DNA of 64,000 nucleotides from Podarcis bocagei. Lineage: Eukaryota. This document shows positions 9,252 to 62,220 of this stretch, piece by piece. Position 1 is the first letter of the stretch; each line of letters begins with the position of its first letter. The notes below the pieces were generated by a model, which ran no database searches, was not told where the DNA came from, and worked only from the letters and a program-made list of their open reading frames with translations. Position numbers and translations under genes: made by a program. The DNA is taken from assembly GCA_964188305.1 (NCBI GenBank), contig OZ076896.1; one strand, given 5' to 3'.

Positions 9252-10639
9252 GTCGTGTTGTAGGTATACATTACTGATAATGCATTAGAACAGAGGTTTC
9301 TGGAATTTCAAAATATGCATAAATACGGGTAGCTTAAGGTGGCAGCAAAGGGGACCTTTGCTAGAAATATATAATAGTTTTGTAATCTGAAAATGTTTTG
9401 TACTTGGGCAACCACCATGGCTTATCATTGCTGTTGAATCAAGGTGTTAACCTTTAACTTCCTTTAAAGCTACAACCTCTCTCTTGCCATGCGTGGCTCC
9501 TGGTCGCCAACATGAAGGCGCTTCTGCAGAATAGAGATGCAGTGAAAATGGTATGCAACAGTGAAGATCAGACTCCATGAGAACGGGGTCAGAAAGATTC
9601 CAGTCTGTCATGCAGAGGAATCCTGGCTGCCAAGAGCTCTCCATAGTGCTACTTCCTTTTATGGACAATGAGTCAAAGCAGCAGCACCAAGGAGAGTCAT
9701 TGAAGCACGCTCAGAGAGAGGGAGACAGCACACAAACTACGCTTCAGCACTATTCCTTGGCACAGCTTCAGTACTCTAGCTCAGCAATGACAGAGATGCA
9801 TTTCAGCAGACTGAGAGGCAGAGGCTGCACAGCAGCAGGCAACTAATTTCGGTCACCTTATTCGCCGAAATTAAACTTGCAGAAGAACAGGCAGTGGGGC
9901 GGCACCTGCTTTGTTTTAACGCTTTGCCATTTCTTTCTGCAAGACCTTGGGAAACACAAAGAGTGTGGTGTAGCTAAACAATGTTGCTACCTACAAAGGC
10001 CTGCCATTGTGTAGAAATGTTTGGCATTTTCTTGCAATGGAAAAAAATAGTACATGGCGCGCGCCCCCCTTGCAAAGCACAGAGAGCAGCGCAAGATCAA
10101 AGACCCTCATGCCACACTGAAATAAACAAACACACATGGATTGCACCTATAAGTCTGGACTTCATATTGTATGTAGCATATATTGCACAACCTAGACAAC
10201 ATCTTACTGCATATACAATTGCAAAATACTGTGCCCATCTAAGTACAACAGCCTTAAGAGAGGCCACACAATACTACATAACTATTGGCATACTCTAGCA
10301 GTTTTTTTTTAAAAATCCTGCTATCCAGAAGCTAGAGAAGAGAGTGTGTGTTCTAAAGCCTGGCACATGTGTTGCAAGGCTGACATTTCTGAGCACATGC
10401 CGTATAAAAAAAACCATATGCACATGATTTATGCTCAGTCCGTAGAGACACACTTAACATAATGTATATAACCTACACAACGTGGAATAGTTTTTTTCAG
10501 ACCGGCACTTGAGGAAAAAACAACACACACACACTTTGTGAATGCAAATGTATTATCTACTTATGGGCGCACACAAAGCACCATTGGAAACAATATTCCT
10601 GAAAGCACGAAGGCATTTTGCCTTTCAGACTTGGGCTAC

Positions 10640-11530
10640 ATCGCGCCAAGGAAGCGGACCGCCAGAATCCCGCGGCGTGTAACGAAGGGAGACAAACGTA
10701 CACACAACCCAAATGTTTACAAGCGCGCGCGCGCCCGCAGATACACACACAGGCGGTGCGCTGCACCTCGGTCGCCGGGCGCGCGCGCCTCCTCGGCCGC
10801 TAGACCTCCTCGCCTCGCGGGCACGGCTCTCGGCGGAGCCTCACCCAGCCCTTCGTTTCTCCCCGGCTCTGCTCACGGGGCTCTTCCCAGGTGCAAAGGG
10901 CGCGCCTTCTTGGCGCATCCGCAGCCGCCGCCGGCCTCTCCTCAGCCCAGCCCACCCCGACCTTACTCTCCTTGCCGCAGCGGCGGCGGCGCCCCCTCGC
11001 TTGCTCGCCTACCTGCCTTCCAGGGTGCCGGGGCCTGAGGGGCCGCGTCCCGGCCGCCGGCGACGCTGCGACGGCGAGCGAGCCAGAGAGGAGAGGCCGG
11101 CCGCCCCGCCCCGCACTCTTATTCCGCGGGCCCGGGGCGGGGATTGTGTGTCTGGCGAGGCGGAGGAGCCACTCCAGCGCCTGCCTCCCCGTCCGCCTGT
11201 TCGCAGCTTCTGGCCCGCCCACCGCCGCCGCCGCCTCGCTCGCCTTCCTGCCTTCCTTCCGTCCTTCCTGGAGAGACGGACTCCGGCCTGCAGGCGGCGC
11301 AGGGATTGGCGAGTCCTTGAACCTTCTCAGGCTCGCGGGGGCCTTGGATGGAGCCGCCCTGCGAGGCGGCAGTTTCGGGGTCCCTGCGCGCGCCTTTGCG
11401 CTCGAGCCACCTGATGGAGCAGGTGGCGACGTCCCCAAGGGAGAAAGGGCAAGTCTTGGGGCGCCTTAAAATAGGGGCGTGGTCAGGATTTATGTAAAGG
11501 GAGGGAGGACACGCGCCTGGTCCTCCTCCT
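10640..11530 (-). promoter_or_regulatory. CpG island promoter of the downstream minus-strand gene (MACIR/C5orf30 by synteny)
   Basis: Very GC/CpG-rich; GC boxes at ~11101-11142; CCAAT (ATTGG on +) at 11305. In human the gene order is GIN1-PPIP5K2-MACIR, with PPIP5K2 and MACIR co-oriented. Confidence 0.8.
10967..11095 (-). other. MACIR: Probable non-coding first exon of MACIR (5' end approximate)
   Basis: Donor GGAGA|GTAAGG at 10967 inside the CpG island; gene identity from synteny only. Confidence 0.55.
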
Positions 11531-11658
11531 CCTCTGCATGGCTCTGCCTAACTGCAGATTCGGGATGAAAGGGCTCCACCTTAAAATACTTCCGTTGGAC
11601 CCCAAGGACTCAGAAAAAAGGCTGCCCCAAATCTTCAGTCATTCGAAAACTAGGAAGT

Positions 11659-11660
<2 letters not shown>

Positions 11661-11734
<74 letters not shown>
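11661..11734. repeat. (AAT)n microsatellite
   Basis: About 24 perfect units. Confidence 0.97.
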
Positions 11735-11736
<2 letters not shown>

Positions 11737-12632
11737 TAACATCGGGGAGTTCCTTTCATGTGGTAAATGAGTCTTGCAAAACTACAAAGAACACACCTGT
11801 TTTCATCTTTTTTGAAAAAGGAAAAAAAACAGTGCTAAAACAAGTTTTCTTGCGTTTGCTGAAAACCTTTTCGGCACTTCCTTCTCAAATTCCTTTTTCC
11901 AATGCAGTTTTCTTGTGCATATTCAGTAAGCATAGCCCATTCCTATTTTTAAATATTTGTATTTTTATTTACTTGATAGTTGGGGGGCTCTGGCTAGACT
12001 CTGTAACTTAAAAGACTAGCAGGTTGGCAGCGTGAGCCTGGCCATTCGTTCCTGGAAGTAAACCACACTATTTCTGTGTGTTGCAGCCTTATTGCAGTGT
12101 AACTTTTTCCTTTAGCCTGCGAAAACTTAAGTAACAGTAAAGGCCTCAAGTTGCCAGAAAGATTCCCATCAGGTTCTTTTTTATGTACCTCGGCTAAATG
12201 CTATGCCAGGGGCGTTGCTAAGTACGTAATCAGGATTGGGAGCGGGGATGACAGTTTAGAGATGTGAATGCACATATGCAGCAGGGCAGCACATCCATGT
12301 GGCAGACTGAGGCACATGGGTGCCCCACTCATCCCTATCGCAAGAGAAGTGGTCTGAGGTGATCTTGCAGGAAACGGCAGCTGTGCAACCCTGGTAAGTG
12401 AGGCTTCAGGACAGGGCGGCAGTGGCAGTTCCCATTTTGCCTCAGGTAGCAAAACAAGATGAGCCACCCCTGCTGTGTAGGGATGCCTCTGGCACATTCA
12501 GATGGGAGGTGGCTGCAGTCTCACAAGCATTGTGCATTACAATAGACCCAGGGGCTCTATATGCTAAATTTATTGGGGTGGGAACAATACAGTAGCATAG
12601 GAAGCTTTCTCAGACCATTGATTCATTTAGAT

Positions 12633-12848
12633 CAGGGGCCAGCAAACCTTGTGGGGGGCCGGACTATATTTTGAAGGGGGGGGGGAGAACGAATTCCTAT
12701 GGCCCACAAATAACCCAGAGGTGCATTTTAAATAAAAGCACACATTCTACTCATGTAAAAGCACACAGATTCCCGGACCGTCTGCGGACCGGATTTAGAA
12801 GGCAATTGGGCTGGATCTGGCTCCCGGGCCTTAGTCTGCCTACCCATG
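12633..12848. mobile_element. hAT MITE A
   Basis: Termini CAGGGGCCAGCAAAC / GTCTGCCTACCCATG; TSD ATTTAGAT / ATCTAGAT. Confidence 0.8.
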
Positions 12849-12856
12849 ATCTAGAT

Positions 12857-13369
12857 CAGTGTTTCCCAAACTTTTTTGGGCAACGGCACACCTGTTTACT
12901 GAAAAAAAATCTCGCGGCACACCACCATTAAAGCCCCGCCCCGTGACGTCAGCGCGCAGCGTCACGCCGGGAGGGACGCACGAAAGTGAAAGTTTTTTCC
13001 CTCCCCCCTCAGTCCCTCGCTCGGAATTCAGCTCGTTTGGGGCATCGCTCCGGCTGCTCCCTCTCCCGCCGCGCAGGAGCGATGCCTCTCTCTGGCTCTC
13101 CCTCCGCGCAGGCTGAGGGAGGGAGGAGGTGCGCGTGTGACCCGTCTCTGCTGGGAGACCAAACCCAGCGAGGCAGAGTCGCGCGGAGGCGCCCAGGCAG
13201 CGCTGCCGGCTGCGAGGAGGAGCGCCAGGCAGCAGCAGGCTTCTCCTCGCCGCCGCCGCCCCGCCTCTCGCCGCCCGACTCGCCCGCCTCCCTCCAGGCA
13301 TCTCGCGGCACACCAGCCAATGTCTCACGGCACACTCGTGTGCCGCGGAACACCGGTTGGGAAACACTG
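12857..13369. mobile_element. GC-rich hAT (Charlie-like) MITE B
   Basis: Perfect 13-bp TIR CAGTGTTTCCCAA, perfect 8-bp TSD ATCTAGAT (12849, 13370). Confidence 0.93.
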
Positions 13370-16300
13370 ATCTAGATCAACATTTTTTACAGACTGGCAG
13401 ATGCTCTCCATGAGTCAATACTACCTTGAAATGCAGGTGACGGAACCTGAGATCTTCTACATGCAAAGCAGATGTTATGGCCTTTACCACAAGGAGATCC
13501 GGGGGGCTGCTGCAAAATAGCTTTGCCTTGGGTTACCCCCCCCCCATTGCTAACAACTCTCTTGCTGACATGGCTGAACTCTGCAGGAAGTTGTCTTCAC
13601 AAAATAAAAGGGCATTCTGCCTCAAACATCTGGAATTAAGGGAGCGGCTTTCAGAGGAGATGCACAGCTTTATTTATTACATCTGCAAACCACCTTTCTT
13701 TGAAGGACCTCAAGCCAGTATGCATGACTCCTCATTTTTATTCTCAAAACAAACTTGTGAGGTCAGAAGTAAAGACAGAGTCAGCCAGTGAGATTCAAGG
13801 GTGAGTGTGGACTTCAGTCATGCTTCAGCACCCTTCAAGATACTAGTCATTCAACTTAAGACGGTTACGATATGGCAGTACCCCTTTTCCTATTATTTCT
13901 CCACTTTTGCTTTTGCAAGGGGCTCCTATGACACTGTCAGCAGGTGGTATCAGACAGGCCCTTCCAACTCACTTTTTTTCAGCCACACTCATTTACGTAT
14001 CTGCATATTTGGTGGCAGTGGCGTGTGTGTGTACTATTGCAGTCTATTGACAAAAATAAGGAAGTGGTATATTTCAGCATTTCCCCTTTTTTCTTTAAAT
14101 TTAATTTTGTTTTTTTAAAACAGGAAAACACATTGCAATATCCAGTTGCTGCACCCTAATAGCCATTTGCCATTTGCTATTCCATGTGTGCTTAGATTTA
14201 TGCCTACCTTCGTCTTTTTAAAGAGACGACTTATGCACCACCGTTACCTCTTTAAGAATTATGTTGCGTTCAGGTACTTTGTGCATTAGCATGCTAAGTC
14301 TAATTCACTCCTTAGCCTTGGCCTGATTTGAAGAAAAATAGGTCATGCTAAACTAAGAATAAGGATTAACATTAGGGAACTATGTTACCGTTTACACTAT
14401 CATCATGCCTACGGCAACTCTTGGCAATGAACAAGGACCTGCACATTTAAAAGTATTGCTTTTCATTGCTGGGGTATTGAAAACTGGCAGCTATGAACCT
14501 TATAATTCCTATATAGGAATTTAGAAATACTTGCAATGCTGTATTGTAACCTTGTTTACCTAAAGAATCCTTAGCAAATTCATTCTGCTTTATTTTAAAA
14601 ATTAGCTGATAGCAGAAAGAAGTTTCTAGAGGAGCAGTTCTTGTTTGCTACAGCAAAAACACTATTGTGGCATCTTTAAGACTTAACAAATTTATTATGG
14701 GGTTGGTTTTTGTGGACCCGTTCATCAGTTGCTTCAAGTACAATCCTAAATTGGCAGGCACACACATGCACGCACGCTCTCATACTGAGAAATAATCTAC
14801 CATAGGGCTAATCTAGAAGGAAAAAAATAACAGAACACCACTTCTTATTGCCTATCACTCCTAGGTGAAACCACTCAAACGTGTCATTAATGATCTACAG
14901 CCCACACCATACAATGCTGCTTACCTGCAGTGTGCCCTGGGGGGTTATTTCTAACAGAAAAGGCCCCCAAACTAAAATAGCTACTCTTCAGCATTAATGG
15001 GTCACATAGCAGGAAGACAGGGAGCAGGCCTTGCAACAAATCCAGATACAAACTTTGTTCCCATATCTCATGAAAGTCCTGTGTATGTAACAGTTGTATT
15101 AGCAGGCAGAGATTTAACATGCTAGGGGATACTGAGCCAGGTGAATTTTTGCTTGTTACACATCTTACAAAAAAGCCCCTGGATTTAATAGTGCTATCAG
15201 TCAGGATAACCTGTTTTGCTGTTTACAATTGGGCAGTAATTTCCACACACACACACCCATGAACAATGTACGTAGCACCATCCTGAATTAGCAAAGCTGT
15301 ATTTAGACATTTATATGTCCTGTGTAGGGTTATCTACCCCCCCCCCCCTTTTATGAGTCTCAGTGTTCTCTACTTGAAATGTGACTACGGAGATACAAAT
15401 GTGATGTAGTTTTATTTAGTAAATATTTCCATATGCAACACTCACCAGTGGGCATCAGACCCTACTTTTCCTCCTGTCTTCATGCATGAAGTGTTCAGCT
15501 GTATAGCAGGCAGAAGTTCAACATGCTGGACATTATACCTGTTGAATTTTTGCTTGTCACATGGTGGTAATTCAGAGACTAAAAACATAAGCTACCTGCC
15601 TGTACACCTGACCAAGTTTTTTAAAAAAACAACAGTGATATTGCATTGGGGTGATTGCTGCCTTTCCCTAGTGGCAGAATGGTCAGTCTGAAACCAACTC
15701 CCACCTTGTGGTAAAGGTAGAAAGTGCAACATAAAGAGTATTTTGGCCTCTGCAATATTGAAGAAGCAATACGACTACATTCCAGGGTTCAAAGGCTTCT
15801 CCAGTTACCCATTTATTCCATTTGCCACTGATTGCATGAAAGGTTGTATCCTAATATAAAAAAATAGCGCTGAATGTGTGGGGCGTTATATGCTCTTTAT
15901 GAGCAGTGAATTACATAGGCATGGTTTTGATATGTGGATTCTGTCAAATGGAAGATGAAGATTTAGATTTTTGTTTAACAATTATAGCTCTACCTGTGCA
16001 AATCTGAGCAAGTCAAGAGAACAGACAGCATAAAACAGCTTACTTAAAAAAAATTGTTTAGCAGAAACCTAAAAAAAGATAGTGAGCTCATTTTACCCTA
16101 ACATAGAAACTAATCAAAATCAGTGTGCGCACTTTAAAGATACATTGCCACAAAGGAAATAGGACAACACAAACACTATTATGCAATGCAGGGAGAATAA
16201 TTAATTTTATAATGGAATGATTTTAGAATGTTGTATTATTTTATTGTTGTTAGCCGCCCTGAGCCCGAACCAGTATGTTTCCATCTTCCTTATAATACAT

Positions 16301-18169: not shown

Positions 18170-18480
18170 TTTTTCTTCAACAGGGTGTTCCATAGACAAG
18201 GGGCCACCACTGAGGTCATTTCTCAGCATCTGGCAGGGGCAATCAGAAGAGGGCTTCCCTCAAGGATCTCAAAGCATGGCCAGGAACATACATGAAGAGG
18301 TGATTCTTCAAATACTGAGGCCCCAAGCCATGAAGGACTTTAAATGCCAAAGCCAGCACTTTGAATTGGGCTAGGAAATGTACTGGAAGCTAGAGAAGGT
18401 GATAAGAGTACTGGCATAATATGCTTGCATCAACATTCCCAGTCAGTAGCCTTTGCTGCCATATTCAGTACTTTTCCAGA
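18170..18480 (-). mobile_element. Old L2-like LINE fragment
   Basis: Degenerate similarity to the L2 fragments at 26760 and 61860. Confidence 0.5.
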
Positions 18481-21566: not shown

Positions 21567-24500
21567 CTGCACACAAGCAAAACAGAATCATGTTTCTTAT
21601 GGTGAATAATAATAATAAAAAGACATGATCAAGACATTTTAGTGTCCGTTAGCTTCCAGGAGGAGAAACTTAAAACACTGAAACCAATACAACTTTGGCT
21701 ATGTCATGCCCAATATTACGATATCTCTGAAACTTGACAAAAATAAAATTAGAAGGATGGGAGCCCGGGGCAGCCTTTCCCTGGTCACTGTCTGAGGTGA
21801 ATGGGAAGCTGCTGCCTCCCCTCTGACGAAGCCTTACTGAAATCATGTGGTTGCAGGTTCCAGTGAGATCCTGTGAGAGATCCATGAGATCTCGCTGGAG
21901 CCCCCAAACCGCTTTTTGTCTAATGCATCATAATGAGACAGAAAAATAAGACCAATCCACACCAAAATGCTCTCAAATTTCTTAAAGTATAAAGCAAAAT
22001 GATTCTGAACAATCTCAGACGATTCTTGTTAATAATTAAGATGGATGTGAAAAGGTTTTTTTCAAGTATTACTTACTTGACATAGTCGAGGAACATTCTC
22101 GCCTACTCAAAGGGTCTTCTTGTGGCGTTGGTTGGATTTTTGCAGGGGTGTATGTATTTAAAGAGTTTTTTCTTGCATCCAGAAATGATGGCGAAGCTAA
22201 AAGGGTTAATAAAAGTTACAAAGCTATTTTATCTTATTCTTTCTCAAGTAACTGGATGTTGTCAATACTGAAGAAGCAGAGATTATATAAAGTATCAACA
22301 AAGGCTGTATTATTCTTTGAACAATTGCCTCTGAAAAGTGTGTACATTGTTTTTATGCAAATAGTACAGTGAACATATTATGCTCCAATATTACTCTTCA
22401 TCAACATGGATCTATAGGTTTTTGTCAACGTCATGTTTAAACTATTAAACAGTCATCTTTTTTGCTTCCAAGAAACCTATTTAGACAAACCTGAAAGCTG
22501 TCTCACTAACTGAAGTTGGCATGCATGCACAGAACATAGGTATCTGGCCAAATATGTATTTTGATATTTTTCTTATGTACTTCTTCTTTGTGTATGGCTT
22601 GCAGACTACTAAATTTAGCTATTGAAGAGTAGGATAATAAACTAGAGTAAGAAGGTCTAATACTGCCTGAATAAAGAACTTTTTCCTCAGAACATATTAT
22701 CTCTGAGTACTAGGTATAGATACCTAACTCAGCTTCTACTCACTTTTTTGACTTAGTGCATCAGGATTTGCTAATTTAAAAAATGTTATGCTTCTTTTTA
22801 CTGCTGTTTTCTACCACAAGGAACTTGTGAATTTTGTTTAAGTAAGAGGCAGGTCTGGAGAATTTTAAATTTACAAAATCAGACATTTTGTGTTCCTTCA
22901 TCCTAGCAGGTGTAACTTGAAACCTGCATTGCACCTTGGAATGTGAAATATATTAAGTCTGTTACCTCTTCCCATGCTCCGTCTTGAGACCAAGCACAAT
23001 GCAGGCTTCATGGCTTCAACACTAGGCCCATTTTTTGATCCTCTCACCTCTCGCTCTGCTTAAAATCTAGCCTGACAAAGAATTCTGGACAGCTCAAAAG
23101 CTTTCTCACTATTTTGTACTAGTTTGGATGCCCTAATAAAGGTATTGCCCTACTATGGAATTTGGGAAATTATTATTTACAGTTTGTTACAGAAATATCG
23201 AGAAATCTGCATGGCAGTGTTCGAGCGGAAAGAGAATAATGTGCTATAGGCATCATAGTGTTCAGGGTCCAATAAGCTACTTCAAGTATACAGAGAGGTA
23301 TGTGCCAAGCAGGATCTTCATTCCCCCACCTCAGCAACTCTATCTGAAGTTGCCTAAGTTTTTGAAACAAAGTTTCTAGCTTAGCTATGGGACATATGTG
23401 TGGAGTGGAGTGGTAGAATGGAAGCCCCACTTCTTTGGATCTTAGCAGTTTTTAATTGCACAAATAAGTGTTGTCATTATACAGAAATTTTGCACAGCAT
23501 ACATGCAGGGTATGTGTTATAGTCATATTGTGTGACTAATTTAAGTTAAATTGCATTCTCTTACACTTCCAAGGACAGACAAGAAGACAGCTGCAGTGTG
23601 GGTAGTGTGGTTATATGCCAATTCATGGGGAAAATGAGGAAATACTTATTTGATTAAATCTGAAACAGTTTATCAGTCCCACACCAGGAAACACTAAATC
23701 CTAGTATTCAATAGAATGCCTATGGCCAGCAGCGTTTTGCAGTTTGCGAAATAAAAGACATAAAAGGTAATTACGCAGAGAAAATGTGGATGCGGCTTGA
23801 AATCTGTCGTACAAAGGAGAGGCAGCAATGGAAGCAAGAAATTCATCCACCTGCTTTAATGACAAGGAGTTATGGAGGGTTTCTAGAGGGCAGATTGAAG
23901 GCACCATGGAATACAATTCAAAGCCTGAAAAAGAAAACACAGACACACACACACCACATATTTCCAACATAAAAGGAAGCAACTGAGCAATTATAATGGC
24001 AAAGGTATGTTCTGCAGAAGTATGCTTAACAGGCCAGAATACAAAGAGACCCGTGCATGCCATGTGCACCAAAGCACTTCTGAACCCAGTGCAACTCTCC
24101 AGATTTCTGCTCCTTTTGCACTGCATCAGAAGCAGCTCCAGAATGATTGCTTGACTTTCTGAAGGGAGTTTTCTCAGGTAGACACATGGCACATGCAGGC
24201 CTGCAGTGAGAAAGATGGAACCAAAAAGCCTCAAACATGATCCTGGCTCCATCCAAACACATGCAATCATACAGTAACACTTCAGATACTGAAACAATAT
24301 GGAGCTGGACTAAAGGGTGTCAGAATTTCCTATACAGGAAGCTCATGGTTCTGCATATACATAATATAAAAACATTTTTATTTAAATAAGTCTAAGGCAG
24401 CAATTTAACCACCACTTACACAGATGTAGACCTACTTATCCATTGTACTCTCCGATAACTCTAATCTAGGTTTTCATTCAATTTATAAATTTCTATATAA

Positions 24501-27500
24501 ACCAATGAAGTAGAGGCTCAGCATGTCCCTATGTTACTTCCATAGGCATCAGAGCTGGCTCTTCAAGTCAAAACTCCTGGTCATCTAAGTCAGAAAGTAC
24601 TGTTTTCTGAGAAGAAAGCAAGGACAACCCTCTTCCAGGATTATGACAAGTTTCCTTAATATTATTTACATCCAGCTTCATTACTTTTATAACAGTTATT
24701 GTCAAGCCACAAATAAATCTGAAATCCAGGGTTAGGCATCATAAGTAAAAACATAATCAACCATGCATACCTGAACTAACATTAATTTAAAACTCCATAT
24801 GCGTACATAAGCTTTAAAAAGCACTTGTGAACTGATTCAGACAGCTCCCCACAAAAAATTGTACGTATAAAGTTTCACTATTATAATTCCGAAAACAAAA
24901 ACTGTAATTTTACTTAAGTTGCTAAATTTCTCCCAAGACCTTTTTTTCCAATGACATAGATTTGCTAATGAATAAGTATTCATGTTTTTAGTGCAAGGTA
25001 CATTTAAATGTAATATGAAGTAAACTATAGTGAACTCCAAAACTAAAGAATTCAAATTCTTGTTATCTGAAATCACTTTTCTCTCCTTAAATTTCTAGAG
25101 AAGGAAACTTTGAAAAAGAACATTTTGGTATCTTATTGAATTGTAGCAGTTAAGCCTCTGTGTGTGCTTCAAGTTAATTGTGTTTAATGCATAATAATTC
25201 TTCTAAGAATACAACACTACGCATGCAGGCAAGCGCGAACCCTTTCTTTGCATTACAGTAAATTCCACGAGAACTGCAGCTTTCCCTGACTGGAGAAAAT
25301 CCACAAATGTGTATGAGTATCTATGTAAGGAACAATTTCATGGGACTATGGCAGGCTATTTTCTTTAAGTGCTCATGTCTATTTTGGTGCTTAGAATTAC
25401 CTCATGTCCAATAAATATCATTTGAAACAGTTAAATCTGAAGCTCAATCATGTCATTTATATTTCTGCATACTTCTTTTAGCTTTATTTACCTAGGAAAT
25501 AAAAACCAACTATTCACTTGTGCACACACCCATCTTTTAGCAGCTTCATTACTGGATTATCAAGCATTGGAAAAATACCCTGAGACATGTGCCGAGAGGC
25601 CATTTCCACTGGACTGAAATTGAAAATGATAAAAACCTATTCATTTGTGTTCTTTTGTTTTTAAAAAGACACCTACGTATTGGACAGTATCCCTTCAAAT
25701 GTCCGATCTGCTAACGTGAGCTGACCTCTATCTTAACATACCAGTTTCCATCAAAATGAAAGACAATGAAAGGGTTAGCGCAGCAACTTAGAAAGCCACC
25801 CTGCCGTCTTACATTTGAAAGCTATAAAGACATACCACTGGCGCCTAGAAATTCCTCAGAAGAAACCGACCAGCACCTAAAGAGGTCTGGATGTTCTGCA
25901 CAGAGGCCCAGAAAATAAGTAAAGCACTGTCAGTAGATACTTGTTTCACCATGTATCTTGAACTCAAGATGAAAGGAAGGGGAAGGCTGAAATGGTTTAG
26001 AAGTTGCGTTGTTATCTTAAAGTTATGGAAGTCAAAGAAAAGAGGAGGCCCTCAATGAAAGGTTAAGAACAAACAGTACGCCACGCCTCATTTTCAAAGC
26101 AGCTGGAGTGATCCCAAGTTACCTGAGGAAGTACATTTAGGCTTCTGAGAAATACATATAACCGTGCAGTAAATTGTGAAAGTTGTGAGGATACATATTA
26201 ATAAGATCACAGCAATCTGTGTCAACACCGCTGTGATAAAAAATATACAAATTTTAAGCACATACTATTTGGATAAAATGTGCTCTGCCAGCTATTCATG
26301 ATATATTTTCCCCCTTATTTGTAAATATTTATTTTTTAGCTCTCATACCTCAACTTTCAGCTGTTTTGCATGCTAAGTTGAGCATCTCTCTTTAGATGAC
26401 TTAATTTTAGAGTCAATGTGCACATTTTTTTTTCATTTTCACAACTAATTCTATATGTAGGTATGAAATACTGTAGTACTATTAGTAAAGATTATTTGTG
26501 ACTGAAGCAAACCTATCATTTTATTATGATGATTTGGGAATAGACACAAATCTACAGCTTCATGAAGACATTATATTACCTTACCACTGAAGTCAGTTAA
26601 TAAATGGCTTTGGAAACTTTTGAATAAGGATAAATAAACTGAGAGCAGCATTACTGTTTCATCTATGATGGAGGAGTGGCCAGCTCAGTTTCTGTGATGA
26701 AAGGAGCAATTCAGTGGCAAAGCTTTGCAAAATGTGTTATATGTTGGGGCAGGATGGGGGCGGCTTCCAACAAAATATTAAAATACAATGGTCTGTTGAA
26801 CATTAAAAGCTTCCCTAAAAAGGGCTGCCTTCAGATGTCTTCTAAAAAGTCTGGTAGTTGACATCTGGTGGGAGGGCGTTCCACAGGGCGGGTGCCACTA
26901 CCGAGAAGGCCCTCTGCCTGGTCCCCTGTAACTTGGCTTCTCGCAGAGGGGGAACGGCCAGAAGGCCCTCGGTGCTGGACCTCAGTGTCTGGGCAGATCG
27001 ATGGGAGTGGAGATGCTCCTTCAGGTATACTGGACCGAGGCCGTTTAGACCTCTGGAGGAAAACATAGCGGCAAGTAACTCATTACAGAAAGCACTTAAG
27101 CTGTCTGTATGAAAGGAAGGAAACTTAAACAAGGTGAAGCAAATCATTTGGTTACTGACAGAAATGTAGGGAACTTTGTTTTCAGTTAACTTTTATTTTA
27201 AGTCTAATGTGATTTCAAGATGATAGCAAGTTCCAGTTGTTATTTATAATGAAATCCTGAGTTCACATAGAATAGGCTTAGCAGTGGTTGTTACCTATGC
27301 TAGATAATCAGAATCTTCATGTTCAAAGGCTGTATACCTCTGAATCCCAGTCACTGGGGGACAAATAGAGGACAGACCACCACTTTCATGCCCAACTTAA
27401 TGAGTTTCCCAGTGCCATCTGGTGGTTGCTGTTGGAAATAGAGGGCTAGAGAAAGTGGACCATTTGGTTTGGTTTAGTAAGGCAGTTCTTACGCTGAGTT

Positions 27501-30500
27501 CCAAAAGTTCAGAACAGAGATATCCAACACAGCAGGATGCCAAAGAATATGAAGGGGAAAGGAATAGGAGCTGTTTAGGATCAGAAAGCTTTTAAACCAT
27601 ACACTATGTGTACTAATTGGTTGTGTCATTAAGAAGACTGCGTAAAAATAGACATGGAATTCATTTAATTCCCCACCCCATCCCAAAAAGGATTTTGAAT
27701 GTGTGAATTTTAAAAGACTAGATTATGGAATTAAAAAGGGGAAAGGGATTTAAATTATCAGAATTTCTAATAATTGACAATATGGCCATGTAATCAGCTG
27801 GAATCAGGGAGGAGGATGGTGGACAGTACTATACACCCCATAGTTTGGAAGGGATGAAGCAAGGGAATACTTTTTTTTTAAATAAAAGCAAAACATACCA
27901 TTGGTTGGGTGTCGAGCAAATGAGATAGAAAACCTTTTAACAGCAGAACCACGTGTGGTGTCTGAGAAAGAGAAAAACAGGTACCTGAAATTCAAAACAG
28001 CTACCAAAAGAGGGATAATTCAAGAAAGGACAGAAGAGGGGGAAACAATGAAGAGTAGGTTAGAACTGAGTGGCATGCAGAGGGGATTGGGAGAGGTGCA
28101 AAGGCCAAAACAGTTTTAAAAGCAGGTAAAACTTTGCTGGTTGTTACTACTAGAGGTTTAATGGAGTGTATGGAAGACAAATACGGGTGAGCTTGTGATT
28201 TTGGCATACAGACATACATGGTTAGAATTGAATATCATGGATGTGACAGTAGGAGAAAGCTGAATGTTTCTTACCCTCAAGAAAGTTAACAAACATTGTA
28301 AAATGGTGGAAATCTGGTGCTGACATGTCTATTCTGCTTGTTACTCTGAAGCCCCAAGCCAAACACTTTCGGGATAATTTTAAAAATAATTTAACAAACG
28401 TACCTCTTTTTAGGACTTTACAAATATTAATGAATCTCCTTTGATTTCTCTAGTTCTCAATAAATGGTTTTTGTTCCATTTCAGGAAAAAATTACCAAAT
28501 TAAATGGTTTTAAACATAGGTTGAACATAAACTTTTTTTAAAGTTGGTTTGTTACGGAAGGGAAAAAGCCCTCCTTCCATCGGTGTGCCATTAAACACAA
28601 TTAATCTCTGAGAAATAAAGGGACACTACAACCCTCTACAAATTAATATTAGTGATCGGTATTATAGGCTTCTACTCTGTAAACAGGCCTAGGACTTTCT
28701 TTCAAGGTTTAATGTGTGCATATGAGTGGGTGGGTGTAAGTGCATGTGCGAAGGTGTGCACATACCATCTATGCAGCCAGAAGAAGTCAGCTTTTTACGA
28801 TGAATACGAGCATAATCCTGTAGGTTAGGTGCACTTGAAGAACCCCCGAGCACCGAAGTGCTAAACAGGCTCGCACAGTGAGACCCTGATGGGAGTTAGA
28901 GAAAATACATACAGCAACCAGGTGTTCTTCTGTTCACATCGGGGATGCATGCAGCATGCAAGCATATCGCTCTTACCACACAAGAGGCTGCCTCTGGCAT
29001 TGCCTTGAACAGGTTCACAATATGCTTATAAAGTCAGTGGTACTTTCAGGATGTAACTACCACAAATTACTGTGCTTCTACTTATCACAATCCCCTTACT
29101 AATTATATACAAAGAGAAGGCTGAACTCTAATGAAGGGAACTTGCTTTTGTTTTCTGTTGTTAGACTTCATAAAGAAAAGAAAACCTGCCTGATAGGCCA
29201 ATGTAAAACAAAAAGGGATGGTTGAGGAAGAAACACAAGAATGAATATTTGCAGTTTATAACTGAATCTGTTAAAATGAGCACTGAACTCTGCAAAAGAC
29301 AGAGATCAGCATATTTTCATGTGGCAATTCCACTTAAATTCATGGGACGTGATCACGTTTTCTTGCACGCGTTCCACTTGTGGCTTGTGGAGACATATCC
29401 CATTAAATGTGTTGAGTTTCTCAATGTATTTTTAAAAGTTAATGGTTGATCTAAAAACAAAAAAAACCATGGTGTACTGACTTTTGCTGTCTCATATTAA
29501 AAACCTTGTTTATAAAGAATAATTCTCTATGTACTACAATATTGGTACCTTCTCCCATAATAATATTTTAATTTACATTTAAAAACCTAAGAAAAGGGCT
29601 ACTTTGGCTGTAATATATTTTGGACAATCCCTTACCAATATAAAATTCATTTCAATGGCACTTGCTCAGGAGAGGTTTCTCCTATCCTTGCCCTTTGAAA
29701 CCTGATCTATTTGCTTTCTAATCATGAACCACTGATTCAAAATTTCTGTTATTACCACTGACAACCAAATGGTGAGGAAAACATTAGTAGCACATCTGAT
29801 GAAACACATCAATATAAATGTCTAATCTGTGGAGAAGCTTTGGAACTTAAGAAATACCTGCATTTAGATCAGTTTTCATCAACATGTACTGTACTGGCCT
29901 GAATATAAGCCTCATTTTTTGCCCAAATTCCAAACGTGAAAAGTTAAAGCGTGGCTCATATTCGTGACCTTACGATATGCAGACAGGAGCGTGGCAAAGT
30001 GGCATCCGTCCTGTGCGTAGTCCCCCGTCCTCTCTCCAAAGGCCAGGAAGGGAAAGTGTGAGGAAGGGGAAAGGTTGCTAGCAACGGACACCCCCCCCTT
30101 TGCAGCCAGGAGCAGCGAGGAATGGAGCGGCTTATATTCAGATTTTTCTTTTCTTTTCCCTCTCCAATTTTAAAGGTGCGGCTTATATTTGGGTGCAGCT
30201 TATATTGGGGCCAACACAGTATATTTACGTGGAATATCACAGAGAACAGGATTGTGCAATTATTGAAGAACATTAGAAAAATTAAACTCCAGTAATCAAG
30301 AGCATCTGATGTATGCATTTTGCTAGGTAAAATTTTGAAACGCGAAGAAACAAAATAAAATAAAATTGTGTATATAGAAAGAATATAGAGTTTAGTAGAC
30401 AACTGGAGAATTTTTTATCTTAGACTGCATTTAATGCTGTGTTTGTTTTGTTTGAAGTGCTATGAAAGTGTTACCCAAAATATTAAAACATTTGCAGAGC

Positions 30501-33500
30501 AAAAAAGTACCGGTAGTATACACTACCAAATGTAGTATAATACACTACAGTACAATGAAAATAGTATTCATTCTACAGTACTAAAATGCTGCTGAAATAG
30601 AAATCTGATGCTTGCTGTAATAAAACAGTTACAATAGCCAAGCCTGTATTCTGAAAGCTGTAGTTGATGGAATTTGGGGTAGTGCAAAGAACATTACTCT
30701 TGTGTTGTTCTTAAATGTATATGGAAAACAAAAAATGAGAAAAATAAAGGTTTTTGATTACCAGGAGAATCTCTTCAACAGTTCCCATCTGACTAAGGAG
30801 CAAGCCCTCAAAAGCCTAGAGATGAATCCTCTTAAAATGGTCTCTATTAACTTGTCAAAACAACAATATGGTTTGGGTTCAAGTGAAAAATTCATGCCAA
30901 CAATGACAACTGATATTCCATATTCAATGACCAAATGACTTATTTGTATTAAAATATTCAAGATACATTATCCAAACAACGGAGTTAACTTTTAAAATAT
31001 CTACAAGCTTGAATACTGAAAACTGAGTAGGTCTACTTTAAAGGGGCAGGACTTTAGGAAATATATACGTACCTATACCGCTTGCCTTTTGCTCCACAAT
31101 AGTTCTTGGTGGTCGGAAATAACTGTTGGTTTCTGTTGGGACCTAGACATGGGAAATGGATAAGTAAGACCAAAAACAGACTAGTGGGATTGTAGAATCC
31201 ATTAAGCTTGAAACAGCAGCCTGTTCATGACAGACAAGTATTAATAAGCCATATGATGCATTAGTAGAGATACCAAAACAATATGGAAGGTCATGCAATA
31301 TTGCTGAAGGGAATCCAGTTCACTCATGAGATCCTTGCAATGAAGTGGTGCAAGCAGGCATTCATGATGACAAAAACAGGACAGACACCAAGAAAGATAT
31401 GAAAACACAGACAACTGTGTCATTTTAGTTTACCAAATGAACACTCCTAAACTGCGCCTGTATTGGAAGGGAGAGGGAGGAAAAAAAAGGAAACATAGAC
31501 AGGCTGATGAGGTCACCTTACAGTCACTGATCCATGCACAGGCTCTTATCAGGGTAAACGTCTGATGTTCACAACCTTTAACCTAAAACTCTTTTTTTCT
31601 ATATCCAAGCAATTTTTAGTTTCAATAGGACATCAAAATAACATTCTTTTGAGGGGGGGGGGGAGGGTTTCCGGTAACAGGGCACCATCCATTGTTTAGT
31701 ACAACCATTTGTAAGTATGTTGTTTTATATCCAACATTAGTCCTACTCAGAACAGACCCACTGAAATGAACAGATATGACTAATTTGGTTTCATTAATTT
31801 CAGTGGGTCTACTTTGGGTATATCTGAGTTGGACAAAAACTGTACACTATTCTATTTTACTGTTCAGTATATGTACTATTTTACTTAATTTCCCCAATAT
31901 GTCAAATTTCACAATGTTATACATTACAATGGATGAAGAACTGTCTTCAAAACAAAGAGAGAGAGAGAGAAAGGACACCTCCAGTTCACAAGTAGAGAAA
32001 ATAATTATTAGTACTAACAATTTTTTTCTTGAACAGTTAATAGGCCATTGAAAAGACAATCTATGCTAATCCCAACTGTGGAATACCAATATTGGACCCC
32101 AATCCAATTACTTCAAATCACATTTTGTTTCATTCATTAGCTAATCATTTTAATGCACCTGCCACCAAATTACTCAATGCTGTTTTTGTTTTGCTTTGTA
32201 AGTAAAAAAAGAAAAGTCTTAAAGGACAACTAAGCCAAAGCTGATGTCTATTTCATGAGGAACTAACTATTTCCATCTCTACAGTGCTGAAAAGAAACCA
32301 ACTGAAAACCAAACAATCAACTACATTCAGTGAAACTTGTGTAGGAAAAAAAAAACATGCACTTGCTTTTTTCCCCCCCGAAGCATTCTTGGAAGTAACT
32401 AGTTTTTTTTATCACATTTTAATGACAGGTGAAATAATTTTCTTTGAATAAAATCCAGAACAAGGGATTAGATGTCCTTAAAGACAGCTGTTTTCTGCTT
32501 GGANNNNNNNNNNNNNNNNNNNNNNNNNNNNNNNNNNNNNNNNNNNNNNNNNNNNNNNNNNNNNNNNNNNNNNNNNNNNNNNNNNNNNNNNNNNNNNNNN
32601 NNNNNNNNNNNNNNNNNNNNNNNNNNNNNNNNNNNNNNNNNNNNNNNNNNNNNNNNNNNNNNNNNNNCAGGTACCAATACACTCTGGGCTAGACACACTC
32701 AGGGGGCTCTCTTCCTGGAAGTGAGAAAGGGGGCAAAAAAACAGCAAAGCATGCAACGTTAGATTCATAGCCAAATGATAAGAAAATGAAATACAGTTTT
32801 GTCTGCACCCTTTGCTAAATAACTTTAACAGCATTATACAGTAATGAGCCGTGTTTCCTATAATAAAATCACACAATACAAACACAACTGGAATTACTCA
32901 GCTCCTATTTTCACCAAAGACACTTAAACAGTACTAATGACAAGGAAACTGAATATGTACATATTTTAAAAATGTCACCATTAATTATGTTCCTCTCGCT
33001 AAGCATAGCAAATTCTCTGTCTGTGCTGCGTTCACTATTAATAAAGCACATATTTCACAAAAACATGTAACTGGCCTCTGATGACACTAACAATATTTTC
33101 TTAATTTTAGTGTCTCTGTTTTTTCCCCTAACAAAACACACCAGTAAAATTTAATCTTCATTCTGTATCCACATGCCACATCTATCCTCTGCATAAACAT
33201 TATACATCCTGCCTAAGCTCCAGGACCAACTCTAAGAACTAAACCAAACACCAGTGACAGGCTGGCACACCAACAATGCTGTTATAACTTAGGTCTAGAT
33301 CAAGACATTCACAAGAAACAGAGTCAGGACCACACTGAAAGAACATAACAGATACATTTATGTTCAATATATATTTAGGGAGCCTTGATCTTCAAGGTTA
33401 AGTTGTTTGATTTTTCTTCACTTTCTCCAAATAGAAGAGAATCAGCTTCACGTTGCTTTACACACCATTTAAAAAAACAATCTTTTTAAAATGGTATTTT

Positions 33501-51200: not shown

Positions 51201-54200
51201 TCTTCTCACCCACATGGGAGGCTAGGAGACTGGGAAACGGGGCTCCCAGGGCAGACCTTGGTGAAGACTTCACTCATCCAGAACCACTCTGGGAGTACTT
51301 AAGGTGAGCTGTGGAGAGCTGCGGAGAGTGGAGTCACCACAGTGGGCATCAGGATTGCCCTCCCATCCTCCCTTTAATATACTGGTTTATAGGTTGTCTG
51401 CTGGAGAGTGACAGTCCCACTTTGACCTTGCTATGGATCATTTTATCACACTGTTTGGCCAGGTCTGCAGGTTTTGCGTACTTCAGCGCAATCATCACAA
51501 CTTTACGGTAGAAAAGCCATTAGGCTGGATCACTACTGAGGATGGGCAGAGGGAGAGACCCCTCTCAAGTTGTCTCATAGGAGGATCCCCTTAAAGGATT
51601 TTGGAGGGCTGCACTTTTTATCCAGATGCCAAATCACCCCCTACTGCTGATCATTGGGGGTTCCCCATCTGTGCTACCTCCCTCCCTAAATTTTGGTCAA
51701 CCCCAGTGCTTCATCAACCAGCAAGCAGGCTGGTGGATCCTTGTAATGCAATGCCTGATGCCTATGCCAAACCTGTTGCATCCGTAATAAATAAAGATGT
51801 GGTCTAACTTGAATCCAACACCTGTCTCCTGTTTCATCCTTTGCTTGTGTGCTCCACCACTGCCTCACTGTGCTTGGGCTTGCAGATAACAATTCTATAA
51901 CAACTCAAAGCTAAGGAGATGCCCTCTGGGGTAAACAAAGACTACTTTCTCCAGCCTTCATTCATTTTACCTTAAAAGCTAGGCATACTTTCCAAGCTAT
52001 AAGCTTCTCCCTTGCATTAAGGATGACTGGATACCGTACTTCTTTCCCTTCACTGTCCCGCTCTACTTTTCCATCCAGTGCAGGGGATTTACGAGCTTCT
52101 GCATGTGCATAATCTGGTCCTACCGTGTATACCTTTATTTGGAAATAAAAAAATACAACAGAATAAAAAACTTGTTTTTTTGGTTCATTACTTTTTCATT
52201 TCATAGTCAGCTCCTGGGCCTCTAAAGTCATACTCATTACTTTCACATCATGGGGAGATTAGTGACAAAATGAAAAGCGCTACAAGTTCCAATGCTATAC
52301 TGTATCCATGTCCCAATTGGCAATCTAATCTTGCTGAAAGTTTCATATTACAGCTTCTGCTACTACCAATTTATTTAACATGACTCCTAATCAGATAGCT
52401 TACAATCTTTGGCCAGGATTCAAAGAATGTGCAATCAGCTCTGCATACCCAAAGGGATTTAGATTTGTTTTTCTTTAAACTGCTCCCTGTCCACATCGCA
52501 TGGCAGCCAGATAATGTACTATGGGAGTTTCAAAAGCAGTGGTATGTTTATTCAAATAAAAAAGTAAAAGATTTCCCTCGTCTTGCCTAAAATAGCTCTC
52601 TGAATCCAACCCTTTGTACAGGATGAACCCACAAAGAATTAAAGTAGGCACAATTGATTTGTTAGGATTATATTATATCTATAATTATCAAACTTCCAAA
52701 CACTTAATTTTGGAAAGCCTCATGCCAATCTGTAGTTACAAGTTGTAATTTTCCTATGTAGAAATATTTTGTCTTAGTTTTCAAAGAATTTTGACAAATA
52801 AAAAAACCAACAAAATCCAGCTGCTGTATGATTAACTGATAATGAATGTTTAGGCAGCTTTGGAGACCACCAAGAGCTACATCAACTGCTCACAGAAATG
52901 CTCCATGATTGCTGAAGACAACTGTTTCCAGACTGTACAGATCAGTCAAAAACATCTCAGTATTTGAAGCATAGTTTTATGATTTAGGAATGCAGGTCCA
53001 TCCCTATACACTTTCTTGGAATTTTGGTCTAACACAATGTACTTTATTTTCAAGAAAGTATGCTTAGGATTGAAATGTTAGAATAATTTCATTTCAGGAC
53101 AAATGTATTTGTCTGAATACACATTCAGAAAACAGTATGGCAGCATGTTTATATTCTTTTTGAATGGTAAACTGTAATCACAAGAGTATCTAGAGAGAGA
53201 GACAAACTAAAACATGAAGTGTTCCTTTTACTTGGAGAAAACAAAACATGATATGTAAACTATTTTAAGTTTAATAATAGCAGTGCTTCAGGCAGAGATA
53301 AATGCCTCACATCTAAAGTTGCCGAGTTCGTTAAGTACTTGATTGTTCTAAATATAAACCAGAATATGCAGTTGTCATACCTTCACATCAGTGCCATCTG
53401 TAGGCATGAACTCCTCATAGATATATGAACCAGTTTTCCTCACACTGCTTTCAGGGGAATAAACACTGCTTCTGCTACCGATCTGAAACACAAACCTTCC
53501 CATCAATATTATTTCATACAAAGACAAAGCCTTCTCAGATCCATAAAACCCTGTACTTCTTTCGTCATCCCTCCCTAGCCTATTTTCCCCCTAGCACTTC
53601 AAAAGTAAAACCAAAAGCAACCTTATGTTATAAAGGTTTATTGTGGTGTAAAAAGGGCAGAAATGTTTAAGGAGGAAAGAGAAAAATCTAGATAGGCTGA
53701 CTCTCCCATGACATAAGCAGACCCAGAAGATTCTCTAGGCAGGTAACCTGAGGTCTCTCAAGTTCACAGAGCATGGAAATAGAAAGGGGCAAACATTCTC
53801 CACACCCACGCTACTCTGCCCATTCCAAGGCACCATCACTCAGTCCAACCTTGCCTCAGTAACACATGAACTTTGCATGCGAAAGATCCAATGGTTTAAT
53901 CCCTGGCATTTCTGACAGGGCTGGGAAAACCTTGTTAGAAGCCCTGGAGAGCTACTGAGGTGGACTAATGGACTGACACAAAATAAACTCTCAGAATACT
54001 TCTGGTGGTAATGATACATAGCGTGTGAGATTGCTTCAAATGAGAGATGGGGAGATAAACTGGGTGTAAGACAAGTTGTGAGCTATTTTGAACACAATTT
54101 TGAAAACTTTACATCATTTGCTCATTATACATTTCCATATTACAGAGCCATCCTCTGTCATGTTATTCAGTGGATAACCATTTCTATTAATGGAGATATT

Positions 54201-61853: not shown

Positions 61854-62220
61854 TAGTAATTTATACCCCACCCATCTGGCTGGGTTTCCCCAGCCACTCT
61901 GGGTGGCTTCCAACAAAATATTAAAATACAATAGTCTGTCAAACATTAAAAGCTTCCCTAAACAGGGCTGCCTCCAGATGTCTTCTAAAAGTCTGGTAGT
62001 TGTTTTTCTCTTTGACATCTGGTGGGAGAGTGTTCCGCAGGGCGGATGCCACTCCCAAGAAGGCCCTTTGCCTGGTTCCCTGTAACTTGGCTTCTCACAG
62101 CGAGGGAACTGCCAGAAGGCCCTTGGCACTGGGCAGAACAATGGGGTGGAGATGCTCCTTCAGGTATACCGTTTAGGGCTTTAAAGGTCAGCACCAACAC
62201 TTTGAATTGTGCTCAGAAAC
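61770..62220 (-). mobile_element. L2-clade LINE 3' fragment with AAT-repeat tail
   Basis: Near-identical to 26758-27050; (AAT)n at ~61790-61850. Confidence 0.85.

Follow-up and report, generated by a model that had tools for sequence, protein, structure and literature searches.

A conserved exon-like element in a PPIP5K2 intron of the lizard Podarcis bocagei: a candidate amniote cassette exon with a putative RBFOX-type distal control block

RESULTS

The PPIP5K2 locus and its phase-1 intron

The DNA analysed here, called the window throughout, is a stretch of 64,000 nt from Podarcis bocagei (contig OZ076896.1, assembly GCA_964188305.1) in which PPIP5K2 lies on the minus strand. An earlier reading of this DNA (below, the original prediction) had named the gene as PPIP5K2. 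This name was backed by a 71-codon exon (40854-40642) with 99% identity to proteins named inositol hexakisphosphate and diphosphoinositol-pentakisphosphate kinase 2, and by the C-terminal exons, which encode the PPIP5K2-type residues FELYSM; the protein P0025, which we take to be PPIP5K1, has FEGCSM instead. Judged by these sequence matches, the gene is PPIP5K2 and not PPIP5K1. A run of N occupies positions 32504-32667 of the window.

The intron with which this work is concerned, referred to as the host intron, extends from 27898 to 23925 on the minus strand. It is 3,974 nt long, interrupts the reading frame in phase 1, as had been predicted, and separates the exons that we call B and C. Exon B (27899-27961, minus strand, 63 nt), the 5' neighbour, ends with the residues ...ARHPTN/G and is a known cassette exon, absent from some isoforms of hippo, carp and others. 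Exon C, the 3' neighbour, starts with G/FELYSM, and its first part covers 23860-23924 on the minus strand. Exon A (28885-28766, minus strand) is 120 nt long. Human PPIP5K2 is reported to have 33 exons and at least 11 isoforms, all of which differ in the disordered region (PMC5891075), and one frame-preserving exon of the gene is regulated during influenza infection (PMC7735754). In the isoforms that we fetched, exons A and B, an exon of 58 aa and, in hippo, an exon adding 39 aa were skipped in various combinations. A combinatorial cassette module in the PPIP5K2 tail is already known.

The window was compared with genomic contigs from a squamate (L002, assembly GCA_051903775.1), a bird of the genus Mimus (L004), a frog (L005), a bat (L006), a paddlefish (L008) and a badger (L010). 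L002 was assigned to the squamates because its whole intron could be aligned to the window. The lizard, L002, the bird, the bat and the badger are the five amniotes referred to below; three further contigs (L003, L007 and L009) end short of the conserved blocks, L001 played no part in the comparison, and none of the contigs was treated as human. In the protein searches the exons were used one at a time rather than as a joined exon model. A profile-free search with a single exon of the window returned mostly genomic ORF fragments together with a lemur protein (P0006). A word search with the ORF 23860-24297 (residues 105-146) returned 23 short proteins, all of them fragments of 80-255 aa, which included P0282 (annotated as partial PPIP5K2) and one protein each from a bird, a frog and a paddlefish; the contigs of these four, together with the genes of the bat and the badger, supplied the loci for the comparison. 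A word search with the ORF of exon B gave no candidates. Every isoform returned by the mammalian word search had exon B joined directly to exon C, as the query covered the point where the two meet, and this result carries no weight against inclusion of the 60-nt candidate described below.

Three candidate segments and the specificity of the selection rule

The original prediction listed three AG/GT-bounded segments of the host intron that stay open in phase 1, together with two TGCATG motifs, and all coordinates, lengths, boundaries and translations were reproduced in our analysis. The 60-nt candidate (c60, 25895-25836, minus strand) lies between ...ctctgtgcag and gtatgt, and its phase-1 frame encodes the predicted peptide. 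The 30-nt candidate (c30, 25579-25608, minus strand) is bounded by ...gtccag/ and /gtattt, and the 45-nt candidate (c45, 25241-25285, minus strand) by ...agtcag/ and /gttcgc. One TGCATG is found at 25227-25222 on the minus strand, 14-19 nt past c45, and the other at 24767-24762 on the same strand.

The rule behind these candidates was counted over the host intron as AG/GT-bounded segments of 15-300 nt whose length is a multiple of 3 and which are open in phase. It was satisfied by 212 segments in phase 1, compared with 168 ± 26 in dinucleotide shuffles, and by 233-234 segments in the other two phases. The rule alone is no better than chance. The motif TGCATG occurred four times in the host intron where 1.6 occurrences were expected, and at least four were present in 13 of 200 shuffles. 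Splice sites were scored with a rough matrix, by which only c60 among the three candidates had good sites: its acceptor ranked sixth of 245, and its donor GTG/GTATGT scored 2.8, the real exons A and B scoring 2.9. The donors of c30 and c45 were poor on the same matrix (ranks 47 and 42 of 221). A strong acceptor at 24606, belonging to a possible 'stop exon' and ranking second on the matrix, was rejected, as it is not conserved relative to L002.

c60 lies within a block conserved among five amniotes

Between the lizard and L002 the host intron could be aligned from end to end with a mean identity of 0.55, and within it the region 26002-25725 showed identities of 0.85-1.0, with 100% over 25824-25765. 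The introns of the bird, the bat and the badger could be aligned to that of the lizard in only two regions, 26001-25749 (82-83% identity) and 25262-25218 (85%); the other matches of these species to the lizard sequence were exons A or B and their edges. The first of these two regions is a block of about 255 nt that contains c60.

The segment itself (25836-25895, minus strand, 20 codons in phase 1) keeps the boundaries cag/ and GTG/gtatgt in all five amniotes. Its orthologues are located at 16958-17017 in L002, 8010-8069 in the bird, 51966-52022 in the bat and 58126-58185 in the badger, and they measure 60 nt in every species apart from the bat, in which a single in-frame deletion of 3 nt leaves 57 nt. 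The pyrimidine tract, the CAG acceptor and the GTATGT donor are invariant in five of five species, and of the three frames of c60 only phase 1, the one matching the host intron, is free of stop codons in all of them. In the 5' intronic flank (25896-26002, minus strand), which comprises a branch-point-like CTGAC motif, the invariant pyrimidine tract and the CAG acceptor, 63 of 100 columns were invariant among the five amniotes. In the 3' intronic flank (25745-25835, minus strand) the sliding identity to L002 was 0.97-1.0, compared with the intron-wide mean of 0.55. Counted over 90 positions, identity in this flank was 88/90 between the two squamates, 73/90 between lizard and bird and 65-68/90 between lizard and mammals; between the squamates the flank was better kept than c60 itself (55/60).

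Conservation of the splice sites and frames in other sauropsids had been named in the original prediction as a check, and for c60 both were kept in the second squamate and in the bird. With its splice sites, reading frame and intronic flanks shared by lizard and mammals, two lineages that split about 320 My ago, c60 shows all the comparative hallmarks of a real alternative exon. The c60 block was missing from the introns of the frog (about 0.7 kb) and the paddlefish (2.7 kb), one copy of each being compared, and with this thin sampling the element looks amniote-specific.

The reading frame of c60 and the protein records

Among the five amniotes 14 of the 60 sites of c60 were substituted and 3 further columns were gapped by the bat deletion, whereas exon B was variable at 3 of its 63 sites in a hand count over the same species. 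Of the substituted sites of c60, 3 fell on first, 8 on second and 3 on third codon positions; therefore, its conservation looks nucleotide-level and not amino-acid-level, and no bias of substitutions towards the third codon position was detected in the five species. By a rough estimate, the open frame combined with an indel of 3 nt would be expected by chance in about 1 case in 20, which we consider suggestive rather than conclusive.

Neither the c60 peptide nor the c45 peptide was present in any of the 332 PPIP5K2 proteins and fragments that were fetched, 15 hippo isoforms included; this set is biased against B-C inserts because the word search favours an uninterrupted B-C junction and the other search gives only fragments of 80-255 aa. 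The original prediction had described the module as absent from the human reference protein, and the absence of the c60 peptide from the fetched mammalian proteins agrees with this. The longest annotated PPIP5K2 product has 1243 aa in both the bat and the badger. An isoform containing c60 and otherwise of full length would exceed this, so none is annotated in these two species. An explanation of the longer mammalian isoforms as products containing c60 and c45 was rejected, as the additional 39 aa of the hippo isoforms sit upstream, between ...GANE and EESPLSV.

These observations bear on a different account of c60, namely that it is a decoy or regulatory pseudo-exon that binds spliceosome components at its conserved sites but is not joined into productive mRNA. 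The block would then control retention of the B-C intron or skipping of exons A and B, and the distal complementary block described below would modulate this control. Such a role is consistent with conservation at the nucleotide level without third-position bias, with a flank more conserved than c60 between squamates, and with the absence of c60 from all fetched isoforms and from the longest bat and badger products. It is also consistent with transcript-derived fragments that retain the 3' end of the B-C intron although the introns downstream have already been spliced out; fragments of this kind were found in several mammals, a mouse cDNA cluster included, and in one bird. Parra et al. reportedly described decoy exons in retained or detained introns in 2018, and c60 resembles these as a highly conserved exon-like element in an intron with partly spliced transcripts, but differs from them in keeping an open, frame-preserving reading frame. 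A decoy needs no frame, yet phase 1 is the only open frame in five species and the sole indel is one of 3 nt; furthermore, inclusion of c60 creates no stop codon, unlike that of most known non-productive exons. We hold the decoy account, the main rival to an exon that is included in mRNA, to be possible but rather unlikely. The conservation of c60 suggests a genuine exon-like element, one that the splicing machinery would recognise and that amniotes have retained since their last shared ancestor; most probably it is a frame-preserving cassette exon whose inclusion is rare or restricted to certain tissues.

c30 and c45 are not conserved as exons

The proposal that c30 is a cassette exon failed when the second squamate was considered, since the whole segment, together with its acceptor, is deleted from the orthologous L002 intron; its sites are also weak. 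No match to c30 was found in the bird or mammalian introns, and on this comparison c30 is a chance match. The second TGCATG (24767) reads GGCATG in L002 and lies inside unconserved sequence, so that this part of the original prediction is not upheld.

The 45-nt candidate presented a mixed picture. Its phase-1 frame is open in three sauropsids, as expected, with lengths of 45, 45 and 42 nt in the lizard, L002 and the bird, but it does not behave as a frame-preserving exon in the mammals, as the frame is lost in both. In the bat the aligned acceptor gives the segment a length of 44 nt, and another acceptor 4 nt upstream gives 48 nt; in the badger the segment measures 46 nt and contains a phase-1 stop. 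In mammals conservation extends neither to the 5' half of c45 nor to its pyrimidine tract; the AG is kept. The donor, GTTCGC or GTTTGC (GTTYGC), is kept but very weak. The invariant part consists of the 3' end of c45 and the next 25 nt or so, TGCATG included. This distribution of conservation suggests that c45 is mainly a regulatory block, and its use as an exon is doubtful.

The original prediction had combined c60, c30 and c45 into one module of cassette exons used in combination. In its favour, all three segments have AG/GT boundaries and an open phase-1 frame in the lizard, and c45 is open in two more sauropsids. Against this stand the deletion of c30 in the second squamate, the c45 lengths of 44-48 nt in the bat, the stop codon within the 46-nt badger copy, the unconserved 5' half and very weak donor of c45, and the 212 segments that the same rule finds in the host intron. 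With c30 lost in a squamate and the c45 frame lost in mammals, we consider the three-exon module very improbable. The original interpretation is partly supported, with one credible exon (c60), one control element (c45) and one noise segment (c30) among its three candidates.

A distal block complementary to the 3' flank of c60 carries an invariant TGCATG

The second region that could be aligned among the five amniotes lies about 500-540 nt deeper in the intron than c60, and about 190 nt deeper in the mammals. It contains a TGCATG of RBFOX type (25222-25227, minus strand) that is invariant in the five amniotes and located at the same relative place; of the two motifs originally predicted, the one after c45 is therefore both present and conserved. 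Next to this motif we detected a sequence complementary to the 3' flank of c60. Arm 1 of the proposed duplex (25756-25781, minus strand) is located +55 to +80 nt past the c60 donor and contains the invariant core AACCCTTTC at 25776-25768. Arm 2 (25233-25258, minus strand), reverse-complementary to arm 1, shares sequence with the 3' end of c45 and with its 'donor' and contains the invariant core GAAAGGGTT at 25246-25238. The TGCATG begins 19-20 nt past the start of the arm-2 core, and 10-11 nt past its end, in all five amniotes, and in the mammals it is about 275 nt from c60.

Between 20 and 22 of the 26 positions of the arms pair in each of four species, and the calculated energy of the duplex was -24 to -29 kcal/mol, compared with -10 ± 2.7 kcal/mol for shuffled arms; none of 1000 shuffles was as good. 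In the badger, where the arms were read by hand, the helix is kept and two further pairs are weakened. Within each species' own intron, arm 2 ranked in the top 0-4% of duplex partners for the c60 flank. Both arms hardly vary among species, and they show no compensatory changes; the bird has one wobble-preserving change and one that breaks a pair. The consensus fold of the c60 block showed no covariation. Conservation, splice sites, frame and complementarity can be read directly from the sequences, and we infer that c60 is used, that the duplex forms and that RBFOX proteins bind the adjacent motif.

Deep non-coding conservation is common inside introns, and both blocks could be conserved DNA elements unrelated to splicing, for example a transcriptional enhancer, in which case the splice motifs and the frame would be coincidental. 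The substitutions in c60, which carry no coding signature, agree with this possibility. However, the features are strand-specific and in the orientation of the host gene, the invariant pyrimidine tract with CAG and the GTATGT coincide precisely with the two ends of a segment that preserves the frame, and the two blocks are complementary to each other. A 50-codon antisense ORF (25766-25918, plus strand) is broken in other species, and an intronic small RNA (snoRNA or miRNA) was rejected, as no Rfam family matched at E ≤ 1 over the whole intron on both strands. An origin of both blocks as DNA elements of this kind is improbable in our judgement.

DISCUSSION

We propose that the two conserved blocks of the host intron pair as an 'RNA bridge'. 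Such a bridge would bring the RBFOX site to within about 70-90 nt of the c60 5' splice site, and inclusion of c60 would depend on RBFOX. Inclusion would add 20 residues (19 in the bat) to the disordered C-terminal region of the protein, between ...ARHPTN and GFELYSM. We put the probability that c60 is an amniote-conserved cassette exon, used rarely or in a tissue-restricted manner and equipped with an RBFOX/RNA-bridge control element, at roughly 0.5.

The candidate exon can be compared with the known cassettes of the PPIP5K2 tail (exon A of 120 nt, exon B of 63 nt, the 58-aa exon and the exon adding 39 aa), which all preserve the frame, show strong nucleotide-level conservation and are skipped in various combinations. 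It is similar to them in lying in the same region of the gene, but unlike them it was found in no fetched isoform, shows weaker conservation than exons A and B, and is seemingly confined to amniotes. In ENAH and KIF21A, RNA bridges are documented to carry distal RBFOX sites to exons (Lovci et al. 2013, as presented in the review PMC10790352). As in these two genes, a conserved distal UGCAUG in PPIP5K2 stands beside a sequence complementary to the exon-proximal part of the downstream intron. In contrast to them, the putative PPIP5K2 helix is without covariation, and the mammalian site is only about 275 nt away. We found no paper on c60 or its distal partner, and nothing relevant that joins PPIP5K2 and RBFOX. 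Since the combinatorial module of the tail is described, the part that may be new is the c60 exon-like element together with its distal partner.

PPIP5K2 catalyses both the synthesis and the breakdown of InsP8, a signalling molecule, and it is a deafness gene (DFNB100), mutations of which cause loss of hearing. A more far-reaching version of our proposal is that c60 is an exon some 320 My old and absent from reachable annotation, switched by the RNA bridge and RBFOX, which would insert an aromatic peptide of 20 residues in excitable cells, for example neurons, muscle or the hair cells of the inner ear. We regard this version as speculative and unlikely.

For the search for exons in intronic sequence, the lesson for method is that a rule built on AG...GT, a length divisible by 3 and an open frame yields hundreds of chance segments per intron. 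Genome comparison alone separated one real signal from two segments that are not conserved exons. If c60 is used, it would offer a clean and testable case in which distant parts of an RNA pair and thereby carry an RBFOX site to an exon. The PPIP5K2 tail would then possess a further tissue-specific switch, amniote-wide and with its own ultraconserved control region, and, if the excitable-cell reading is true, the InsP8-making enzyme would exist in those tissues in a form of its own.

Features within the B–C intron

In the consensus fold the acceptor of c60, the 60-nt candidate cassette exon in the PPIP5K2 B–C intron, has its GUGCAG (window 25900–25895) paired with CUGCGC (25787–25782), the final four bases of which are the opening four bases of arm 1, one side of the proposed long-range duplex downstream of the c60 donor. 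The long-range duplex would face competition from this local pairing, which could serve as a switch; no covariation backing the acceptor–CUGCGC pairing was found in the consensus fold. At 24606–24568 (minus strand) the intron's second-best acceptor according to a rough splice-site matrix leads into a short stretch that stays open up to a TGA, and neither the acceptor nor the open stretch was conserved in the second squamate. An intronic, repeat-like ORF was also noted at 26842–27147 (minus strand; peptide ...[11 protein letters not shown]...[15 protein letters not shown]...), with similar ORFs near 62000–62200 and at 18243–18359. Since the orthologous stretch of the second squamate did not align there (identity about 0.3), the ORF fits a lineage-specific interspersed repeat.

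Transcript-derived fragments and sequencing runs

Transcript-derived fragments from mammals and one bird (P0278, P0285, whose cluster includes a mouse cDNA, P0290 and positions 1–150 of the short contig L007) begin within the 3′ end of the B–C intron and are spliced downstream, a pattern pointing either to retention of this intron or to a start of transcripts at an internal site. The 14 sequencing runs X1–X14 are small assemblies of 72–148 Mb whose type was guessed as RNA. About half of the words sampled from the mostly intronic region 23600–28900 were present in each of them, and the runs could represent DNA, capture data or intron-rich RNA.

Flanking regions and the known cassette exons

Further upstream, a coding exon (...[15 protein letters not shown], then N) is interrupted by a run of 164 N (32504–32667). 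In hippo isoforms the orthologous exon is the 58-aa cassette exon. Hippo isoforms also carry a +39-aa cassette exon placed between ...RKMGANE and EESPLSV, for which the corresponding lizard intron lies at about 35400–32900. A candidate 24-nt microexon was proposed at 31434–31457, between exons 25 and 26. A GC-rich island (10000–14000; 52%, against about 38% elsewhere) is found past the 3′ end of PPIP5K2. The island may be the promoter of MACIR/C5orf30, since at the frog locus the next gene downstream contains the Pfam domain UNC119_bdg (MACIR/C5orf30).

The known cassette exons A (28885–28766) and B (27961–27899) were nearly invariant at the nucleotide level in the lizard, the second squamate, the bird, the bat and the badger. 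Among these five amniotes only 3 of the 63 sites of exon B varied, synonymous sites included. Such near-invariance in the aligned sequences suggests that the whole alternative-exon region of PPIP5K2 is under strong RNA-level constraint.
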